Notes under the pieces: model-generated
Seen by the model: the letters and a program-made list of their open reading frames with translations, nothing else
What the model was told of the DNA's origin: nothing
Databases searched by the model: none
Position numbers and translations under genes: made by a program
Shown here: positions 18,001 to 21,000 of the stretch, piece by piece
Layout of the letters: each line of letters opens with the position of its first letter
Numbering within the stretch: position 1 is the first letter of the stretch
Source of the DNA: Chrysemys picta bellii
Lineage: Eukaryota
Length of the DNA: 64,000 nucleotides
Assembly: GCF_011386835.1 (NCBI RefSeq)
Contig: NC_088798.1
Location: 86,552,001-86,616,000, forward strand
Direction: 5' to 3'

Positions 18001-21000
18001 CACTGTAAATATTTTTGATGAGAATTTTTTGTCCAGCTCTAATTATACTCCAGTCCTTCTCAACCATTTGGTTGGTGGAAGTTTTGTCTTTGATGTTGAT
18101 GGGCACAGTTCAGGTCCAAAATTAAGAATGAAGTAAACAGAAGAAGAGTCTAACTTAAAAAAGCAAAAAAACAAACAAACAAACAAATCGAGATGAGGAT
18201 CCAAAATATACAATTGATAGTCCACCCTTTAACCCAAGCCATTGGAGAAAAGGCAGCCCAACGTCATGAGAGACAGGCAGAGAAAAGAGCTTGTGATGGG
18301 GGTTTTGTTTGCATTTTGTCACTCTTTTAACATAACTTTTCATAGACTTCTCCAATTTAACACTATATATATAATTTTCTTTAGGTTTAATGGTAAACCT
18401 TTCTTTGAATTTAAGTATTGGTTTTAACAGAATACAAATCAAGAGAAAAACCTCTGTTCTCAAATCTGAATGGTGGATCTTAACTCTGAAATTCTCTGTA
18501 CACGTATGCCTGGAATGTCTATGGATACCACACAGCAGAAACAGTCAAAACTGACCATGTAACTTTTCCAAGAACAGAATTCTGTTCCTAGTAGGATTTT
18601 TTTAAAGGTATTTATTTGGTTTCAATACAATTATTTATTTTTGTTCCCTAGGATCCATTAGCTTTTTCTTTCTCTACTTAAAAACAAATTCCCATCACAC
18701 TACAGTAGCTGTTCAATACAGTGGATTCAATACAACAAATGAATTTCATGGTAAAAACATTAATACCAGCCACAGTTCTTGCTGGAACAGATTCTTTGTT
18801 GATCCAAAACACAACCTGAGACAGGACTACAGTCATGGTGCATGGAATATATGTCTGAATGAGATAGTAGCCTATTTTCCTTTGCAGATGAAAATAGAGC
18901 AGCTGAAGTGAATATTCACCTGCAACAAACAAGCAATGAAAGGTGATGAATAAATGGAATGATGACATGAGCTGTTGCAGAGACTTTAACACAGCATACC
19001 AAAAACTGTTCTAGCTGGAACAGATTCCTTATTAATCCAGAAAGACACCTGAGAAAGAATGACTGTCATAATGCAGGGAGTATAAATCTGTATCATGAAG
19101 TAGCCCATCTTCCTTTGCAAGTGGAAATAAACTGTCATTATTACGTATTCACCTGTTAGGAGACAAGTATGTCAGCATTATTTTGGCAATATATGAACAA
19201 ACATTACTGGAGTAAACTTTGGAATGTCTTAAATTAATATGCTGTGTTTTGAGGAAAGCAGTGGCGAATAATGGGCCTCCTACTATATGATAAAGTTTAG
19301 CTGATCAATAGACGCTAAAGTGAATCAACCGAGATAAAGAGAAAAGGTGAATCCGTTATTACTTTGATATGTTGTTCTACTACTGAAAAAGCAGTGTTCC
19401 TGAAAGTTACATTAAACTTTGCCCACCTATGAGCAATATGTTGAAAATCAATCTTTTGCAGGAAACAAACGAAACCTTTTCAGCAATTTTAGTTAGAGGA
19501 AGAAGAGTAAACAGTTAAGAGATAAAAAGAAAACAATTTAGTTGGTTTCCAATGAGTGTTTTATAATGTGTCAATTCTACATGAGGCTATGTCTTACCTG
19601 TGTTAGATTTAATTGTTTCACTAGACACTGTTTGTCCTATAAGATCATACTGGAGGAGACTGGAAGACTCTTGTGGTACTTCTACTGAATACAGAGGTCC
19701 CTTTTTCCATGTGTAAATGATTTCACTTTTTGGATAGGCATCTGGGGTATCATGGAGAAAAGAATCGATAGTATTAATTATATTACAGTAATGCCCAATG
19801 GCCAAAATAAATACTATGGCCCCACTATGGTAGGTGTAGTACAAACAAGGAGACTTGGTCCCTACCATTTCAAACTCTTTCTAATCTAATTAAAATTCAA
19901 TTCTAATTAAGATTCAACTCCTGAGCATAACAAACAGGAGCAGGGACAGGAAGGATGAGGGTAATAATAGTAATAATAGCTTCTCCTTCTCAACCTTCCT
20001 CTTCCACCCTGGCTCCCATGTAGCTAGCATCTCCACAGGACCCTTTTCTCCCATTTAGCAACATAGGAATGGCAGACGGTGCTCATGCCCAGGTTGAGAA
20101 CCCATAACATAGACTAACAACATGCCTCAGCTTGAGGGTTTTAAATTACATTAAGGTTCTTTTTTATTCTAATTTTAAAATTCCCTATCAACTCATAATG
20201 CATTGTTCTCCCTTAATATTTGTCTTGTTTCCCTCCATAAATAAAAGGTTATCCTGTACCCATGGCCTTTGTATTTATTTTCCCCCGGCGCTACATAGAT
20301 TACAACCACCACCCATCTACCTACCATTAAAGAGCCTTATTAAGAAACATAAGCTATCACTATGGCTCCCTGGGATGATGGGTCCCCCTCTCTCTACGTA
20401 AGCCCCCTCTTGATGTGGTGTATCTGCCACATGTGGGTCTCTGAGACTGTCAGGGCCCTGAGAGTTATCCCACTCACTCCGCTATTGCCCACATTGGAGG
20501 GGTGGTTCCCTCCAGCTGAGGGCATAAAGTCTGTTGATTGCAAGTGGTCATTTCAACATCGTTCTTCATTCAAAATATACCAGTTTCTTTAATACGTGAG
20601 GGCATGTAGTGATAACCTTTCTTCACTGCTAAAACAACAGATTTGTTAAAAGGTACCAGTATAGACTTGGCTGTGTCAGAATAACAAAAAACAATACAAT
20701 TTATAGCCATGAGCTTGCAATGAGATCCACTAGCCTGGATTCCACTGACTATGCAAAGTCCTGGTCCTAGTGGTATGCATTAGCAAATTCTGATGTGGGA
20801 TATGGGTCTATAGTTAGTTAACTCCTATTAAGGACTGCCCTAAGACCCCATTTTATGAATATATATATTAAAAACCTGAAACTTTTACAAAACTTACAGC
20901 TCCCAAACTTCAATGGACAAGCATGCCCATCCATAGGGAAGTTTACCAGCCGCATGGGACAGTCAGCATTAATGGTCAGTCTAAAATACATTAAAATAAA

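Follow-up and report, generated by a model that had tools for sequence, protein, structure and literature searches.

Exons 3A and 3B of GLRA2 are tandem, homologous and mutually exclusive, and in the intron beside one of the two lies a UCAU-repeat tract, the (UCAUY)3 site of NOVA-1. Jensen et al. 2000 reportedly placed this site upstream of 3A and found that NOVA-1 promotes that exon. GLRA2 is the closest described case to the one presented here, which concerns GABRA6, likewise the gene of an inhibitory Cys-loop receptor subunit, in a 64,000-nucleotide (nt) stretch of the Chrysemys picta bellii genome (contig NC_088798.1, positions 86,552,001 to 86,616,000; hereafter the window). In the window two tandem, homologous M1 exons, 7a and 7b, are separated by a very short intron, and a tract of UCAU-type YCAY motifs lies in this intron beside 7b. 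Beyond the position of the site upstream of 3A and the promotion of that exon, the two cases differ in two further respects. The NOVA cluster of GLRA2 is conserved only in mammals (PMC2014790), whereas the GABRA6 tract is found in non-mammalian vertebrates and has been lost in the one mammal examined. And while the dependence on NOVA is proven for GLRA2, the GABRA6 tract is a candidate put forward from its sequence: a good candidate, in our judgment, for a switch deciding between 7a and 7b, and one that is probably bound by NOVA.

The elements named NISS2 and NISE2 in the RNA map of NOVA are said to go back to Ule 2006 and Jelen 2007. The GABRA6 tract fits this map in the type, density and spacing of its motifs and in its distance from the splice sites. 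NISS2 lies upstream of an alternative exon and silences it, and NISE2 lies downstream and enhances it (PMC2014790). The tract occupies the NISS2 position relative to 7b and the NISE2 position relative to 7a, and because the intron between them is so short a single cluster would have to play both roles. The annotation of frog isoforms, however, does not obviously follow the direction that the map predicts.

Two further systems bear a looser likeness to this locus. Exon 9 of GABRG2 is an alternative exon with a UCAU-rich intronic element in a GABA-A receptor subunit gene, but it is a 24-nt cassette and not a member of a homologous pair; its NOVA enhancer, by the account of Dredge and Darnell 2003, is said to be distal and downstream. 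Exons 2 and 3 of alpha-tropomyosin resemble 7a and 7b in being adjacent alternative exons with a very short interval between them. There the branch point sits about 41 nt from the upstream donor, which is too close, as a branch point less than roughly 50 nt from the upstream donor is sterically blocked. In GABRA6, unlike alpha-tropomyosin, a distance of 62 nt separates the candidate branch point from the donor, and the ancestral-type intron of the sturgeon is long.

The tract between exons 7a and 7b

The gene lies on the minus strand of the window, and it can be identified as GABRA6 because the peptide of exon 7a is identical at 50 of 50 positions to the alpha-6 chain in PDB 9oum_C. Exon 7a (19000-19152) is the canonical pre-M1/M1 exon, 153 nt long with phase-1 introns on both sides, and exon 7b (18767-18919), the alternative M1 exon, has the same length and phase. 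The two agree at 107 of 153 nt (70%) and 36 of 50 amino acids (72%); of the codon differences between them 18 are synonymous and 14 are not, and the peptide of 7b is alpha-like yet divergent. They are thus of equal length and phase, homologous and adjacent, as tandem-duplicated exons are. Both have weak donors (GTATGC in 7a, GTATTA in 7b), which are typical of regulated exons; those of exons 3-6 read GTAAGx.

The intron between them (18920-18999, minus strand) measures 80 nt, with GT-AG ends and the 7a donor just given. Seven YCAY motifs are packed into 35 nt of it, at 18970-18936, where the minus strand reads TCATGTCATCATTCCATTTATTCATCACCTTTCAT; in order the motifs are TCAT, TCAT, TCAT, CCAT, TCAT, TCAC and TCAT. 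An earlier note on this DNA had claimed such a cluster inside an 80-nt intron between two exons, and the motif count, the coordinates and the intron length all agree with it. The distance of the cluster from the 7a donor, upstream of it, is 29-63 nt, and that from the 7b acceptor, downstream of it, 16-50 nt. The cluster has the highest density of YCAY per 35 nt on either strand of the whole 64 kb, against a minus-strand background of about 0.5, and the remaining acceptors of GABRA6 in the window have only 0-2 YCAY across the 60 nt upstream of them. The second-ranking 35-nt stretch, with six motifs, is at 16078-16112, also on the minus strand, in the intron between 7b and exon 8 and about 2.7 kb downstream of 7b.

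The density of the cluster is far above chance. When the whole minus strand was shuffled 200 times with dinucleotides preserved, the maxima were 4-6 YCAY per 35 nt and seven were reached in none of the 200. When the 80-nt intron was shuffled alone, it held 3.8 YCAY on average; seven or more in total came up with P = 0.007, and seven within 35 nt in 0 of 5000 shuffles. Since the shuffles never gave seven in 35 nt, the cluster is not due to chance. The published description of NOVA clusters calls for at least three YCAY within about 45 nt, with gaps of at most 9 nt (at most 3 nt in the strict form), and for a position no more than 200 nt from the splice sites of an alternative exon (PMC2014790). 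The GABRA6 cluster has seven motifs in 35 nt with gaps of at most 4 nt, all within that distance of the splice sites of the alternatively used exons 7a and 7b; the strict gap rule splits it into sub-clusters of four and three motifs. With these features present at the level of sequence, we list the tract as a candidate for the NOVA-regulated class and not as a member of it.

A simple microsatellite was rejected for this genome, as Tandem Repeats Finder found no tandem repeat or array in the intron. The intron holds no CACA or CUCUCU runs. The predicted fold of 18880-19040 is no better than that of shuffled sequences (z = 0.04; long-range pairing was not searched), and an RNA structure of the docking or selector type is not supported for this segment. 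The only Rfam match was a chance one to an archaeal snoRNA, on the other strand, with E = 0.2.

The geometry of the intron bears on an explanation in which the tract plays no part in the choice. A short intron alone, of the kind known from alpha-tropomyosin, could sterically exclude the joint use of both exons, and the intron is indeed 76-124 nt long in all tetrapods examined. The candidate branch-point A at 18937, however, which we place from the yUnAy consensus, lies 18 nt before exon 7b and 62 nt from the 7a donor, and this inferred position is beyond the limit of roughly 50 nt, so that the exons lack the closeness on which the exclusion depends. The corresponding intron of the sturgeon has 1449 nt, and annotated models from frogs, sturgeon, shark and stork contain both exons. 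Steric exclusion would in any case explain why the exons exclude each other and not which of them wins. We regard it as quite improbable that the short intron is the whole explanation.

An ancient pair of M1 exons

Exon 7b is a real exon. A HMMER scan with its peptide found read-through genomic open reading frames (ORFs) in other species that contain 7a, a short intron and 7b in this order, along with a large set of 7b-type exons from fishes. With a Xenopus laevis model as its starting point, a word-index search yielded about 100 full-length GABRA6 proteins with a 7b-type exon, none of them from a mammal. In RefSeq isoforms exon 7b replaces 7a in dozens of birds, among them zebra finch, quail, ostrich and pigeon (isoform X2), in the turtles Pelodiscus, Caretta and Pelusios, in many frogs, and in sturgeon, bichir and bowfin. 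When exons 3-6, 7b and 8 of the window are spliced together, they give an open frame of 309 amino acids, 307 of which are identical to the bird isoform X2. A search for spliced ORFs joining 7b to exon 8, in the range of 67-213 amino acids (query P0151), returned only homology-based bird models.

There is also direct transcript evidence for the splicing of exon 6 to 7b to 8 in a related species. A Logan contig of 3038 nt (L008, from SRR23174785) has an uninterrupted ORF of 465 amino acids and aligns to exons 2, 3, 4, 5, 6, 7b and 8 and the start of exon 9 of the window, skipping 7a. Each exon has thus been seen without the other, 7b in this mRNA and in the RefSeq isoforms and 7a in the canonical alpha-6 protein. 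The reading in the earlier note is thus supported in part, in that 7a and 7b are homologous and compatible in frame and are used as alternatives, the last shown by the RefSeq isoforms and by the contig, which joins 6, 7b and 8. Word shares in a run index point, indirectly, in the same direction: the RNA-like run X3 holds 0.75 of the words of 7b and just 0.15 of those of a 701-nt stretch, many other runs hold about one exon's worth of that stretch but not 7b, and run X1 seems to hold the words of both exons. This suggests that some of the RNA-like runs carry only 7b words and others only 7a words. It is worth pointing out that exon 7b itself is not new, since 7b isoforms are already in RefSeq, and that full-text searches of the literature found no paper on the GABRA6 exon pair or its regulation. 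What is added here is that the pair is ancient, that it has decayed in a mammal, and that it is always accompanied by a YCAY tract.

Models of about 500-518 amino acids with the two exons in tandem exist in RefSeq and GenBank for frogs, sturgeon, reedfish, shark and stork (P0294-P0305), and they are likely to be annotation artefacts or minor transcripts. These models gain a 51-residue helix and inflate the alpha-6 lengths found in databases; the stork model stands in a 90% cluster with 72 members. As 153 is three times 51, the inclusion of both exons and the skipping of both remain in frame, and nonsense-mediated decay cannot enforce their exclusivity.

The age of the pair can be read from a maximum-likelihood tree of the 50-residue exon peptides. 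It separates 7a-type from 7b-type exons with support of 100/99, and groups the 7a type with the M1 exons of alpha-4 and alpha-1-like genes. The 7b clade contains shark, sturgeon, reedfish, bichir, bowfin, frogs, turtle, birds and the alpha-6-like genes of teleosts, and because it spans from shark to birds the duplication must be older than the split between cartilaginous and bony fishes. Measured against the 7b peptide of the window, those of turtle and birds are identical at 49-50 of 50 positions and that of the shark at 43 of 50. Most non-mammalian jawed vertebrates thus retain a second M1 exon under purifying selection.

Some lineages have given up one of the two exons. In one teleost locus (L002, SRR31175860) there is a 7b-type exon only, with 7a absent within 560 nt upstream, a case that may represent an alternative exon fixed after gene duplication. 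Indeed, a 7b-type exon is the sole M1 exon of the teleost alpha-6-like genes (L002; P0181, P0390, P0392), some of which are named alpha-4-like in their sources. In X. laevis (L007:8006-8435, CM004470.1) exon 7a has decayed, its acceptor lacking AG and its donor reading CT, next to an intact 7b; this copy may be a homeolog that is turning 7b-only, or a pseudogene. The hypothetical protein OCT88350.1 of X. laevis reads through both exons of this locus. Both exons are present in X. tropicalis, and its RefSeq protein uses 7b. In the deer Cervus elaphus (L012:6424-6552), a dead relic of 7b, with both a frameshift and an in-frame stop, lies 88 nt downstream of an intact 7a, and its 46% identity (E = 8e-9) still makes it recognizable. 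This relic, recognizable yet dead, indicates that at least this one mammal lost 7b by decay and not by deletion.

The tract across vertebrates and its possible readings

The maximum number of YCAY per 35 nt upstream of 7b was scored in 11 loci that hold both copies, with X. laevis included despite its decayed 7a. The window gives seven in its 80-nt intron, the stork (L011) five in an intron of the same length, and two other sauropsids four in 87 nt (L001) and three in 84 nt (L006). Among three passerines the counts are five in 76 nt (L005), four in 83 nt (L004) and six in 110 nt (L003); among frogs, three in 111 nt in Ascaphus (L010), four in 121 nt in X. tropicalis (L013) and four in 124 nt in X. 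laevis (L007). The sturgeon (L009) has four, in an intron of 1449 nt. A YCAY-rich tract of 3-7 per 35 nt is therefore found just upstream of the 7b acceptor in 11 of 11 loci, which means that other vertebrates conserve it at the orthologous position, though these loci are related by phylogeny. The control acceptors of the same genes (n = 28, from five species) have 0-3 per 35 nt and mostly 0-1.

The tract is missing where no choice of exon exists, in one teleost gene and one deer relic. The 7b-only exon of the teleost locus L002 has a single YCAY upstream and no dense tract, and in the deer relic, where the homologous block is deleted, no 35 nt contain more than two. The earlier note had proposed to ask whether the cluster is kept together with 7b and lost without it, and the pattern came out in that way, the tract being present in all 11 both-exon loci and gone from the deer and from the teleost gene. 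The individual motif copies turn over among species, and one passerine has a (CATT)11 array at this spot, while the YCAY class persists; turnover of copies with persistence of the class is expected of a multivalent protein-binding site and not of a single branch point. The intron as a whole is also better conserved than its surroundings, with an identity of 0.70-0.79 among sauropsids, versus 0.57-0.70 for the 100 nt flanking the exon pair, although the identity of the window intron to those of birds is low. The tract is, then, a conserved, multivalent, UCAU-rich element in the 3' splice-site region of exon 7b.

The passerine array raises the question of whether the tract could be a remnant of a neutral (TCAT)n or (CATT)n microsatellite with no function. 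This is very improbable, as a tract that persists in the same place from sturgeon to birds outlasts any neutral microsatellite.

In our preferred reading, this conserved tract acts in cis on splicing, would be bound by NOVA1/2 and would favour 7a over 7b; we put the probability of this reading at roughly 0.4. The UCAU/YCAY tract would bind NOVA1/2 multivalently. As its TTCAT units fit the branch-point consensus, U2 would face competition at 7b from a protein bound to them, and NOVA sitting on the branch-point candidates of 7b would thus hinder the recruitment of U2 to that exon. The hindrance of 7b would favour 7a, and 7b would be chosen where NOVA is low. In the short intron of tetrapods the tract is also about 30 nt from the 7a donor, at the position of an enhancing site, and might act there as well. 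We infer both NOVA as the binder and the direction of its effect.

The main rival of this reading takes the tract for core splicing signals only, that is, for redundant branch points and a pyrimidine tract interrupted by A residues, on which the 7b acceptor of a very short intron would rely. The YCAY motifs would then be a by-product, and which exon is chosen would depend on the strength of the splice sites, the size of the intron or something else. Several observations agree with it. The best-conserved block of the intron is its last 24 nt, CCTTTCATTGCTTGTTTGTTGCAG, which is kept among sauropsids and includes TTTCAT at -18; within it the last YCAY copy, in CCTTTCATTGCTTGTTTGTT, is almost invariant across sauropsids. 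The tract follows the 7b acceptor in the long sturgeon intron, and it is gone once 7b decays. On the other hand, ordinary acceptors in the same genes need just 0-2 YCAY, the multiplicity of the motif is maintained while single copies turn over, and the constitutive 7b-type exon of the teleost has an ordinary acceptor with one YCAY. We therefore hold it possible, but rather unlikely, that core signals are all there is to the tract.

The reader of a regulatory element need not be NOVA; it could be, for example, hnRNP L/LL or PTBP, which bind CA-rich or pyrimidine-rich sequences. The conservation of the tract would look the same in that case, and CA, U and C are abundant in it. The enriched word, however, is specifically YCAY and mostly UCAU, and the runs of CACA or CUCUCU that would speak for such binders are absent from the intron of the window. 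This makes a different reader improbable, although less so than steric exclusion.

A number of points weigh against the reading of the tract as a NOVA-bound element favouring 7a. Its TTCAT and CTCAT units both fit the branch-point consensus yUnAy, and the fit of TTCAT means that the conservation of the tract could reflect core splicing signals; the best-conserved YCAY of all (TTTCATTGC, at -18) is probably the branch point itself. The tract is thin in the sauropsid L006 and in Ascaphus, with three motifs per 35 nt. The 11 loci share a phylogeny and their counts are not independent, and the controls in which no choice exists are one teleost and one mammal. A decaying pseudo-exon, furthermore, loses its flanking sequences regardless of what they did. 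The tract is present in frogs, yet there (X. tropicalis, Bufo, Spea) RefSeq gives 7b as the only form or the main one, which is the opposite of what a simple silencing of 7b would produce. In the sturgeon the tract keeps to the 7b acceptor and is 1.4 kb away from the 7a donor, which means that an action on both exons at once cannot have been the ancestral state; the idea that one cluster acts on both can hold only for the short intron of tetrapods.

GABRA6 encodes the signature subunit of tonic inhibition in cerebellar granule cells, and almost all study of it has been in mammals, where there is a single M1 exon. M1 lines the transmembrane pockets for anaesthetics and neurosteroids. A larger scenario, to which we would give less weight than to the preferred reading itself, is that a switch read by NOVA and some 450 million years old picks the M1 version of alpha-6 in non-mammals, that mammals lost 7b and the switch together, and that teleosts and frogs shifted to 7b. 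If it were true, the isoform would be a factor in the pharmacology and gating of alpha-6 receptors in birds, reptiles, amphibians and fishes, and one that all mammalian work lacks. Since every lineage examined that has both exons also has a UCAU-rich tract at the 7b acceptor, the choice of the alpha-6 isoform is directly testable. The NOVA network would, on the same condition, gain a deeply conserved non-mammalian target, as opposed to the mammal-only clusters of the GLRA2 type (PMC2014790).

Other features of the window

The other exons of GABRA6 could be placed on the minus strand as follows. Exon 2 is located approximately, at about 23556-23447, while exon 3 (22852-22919), exon 4 (21068-21288), exon 5 (20898-20980) and exon 6 (19598-19741) were mapped exactly. 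Exon 8, which encodes M2-M3, is at 14163-14422, and exon 9 starts near position 44 and runs out of the window. The intron between 7b and exon 8 (18767-14422) is 4.3 kb long, versus 397 nt in the sauropsid L006 (2260-2656). At the far end of the window, a perfect tandem repeat with a period of 5181 bp occupies 50429-64000 in at least 2.6 copies of 100% identity, reaching the window end; it must be a duplication of very recent date or else an artefact of the assembly.

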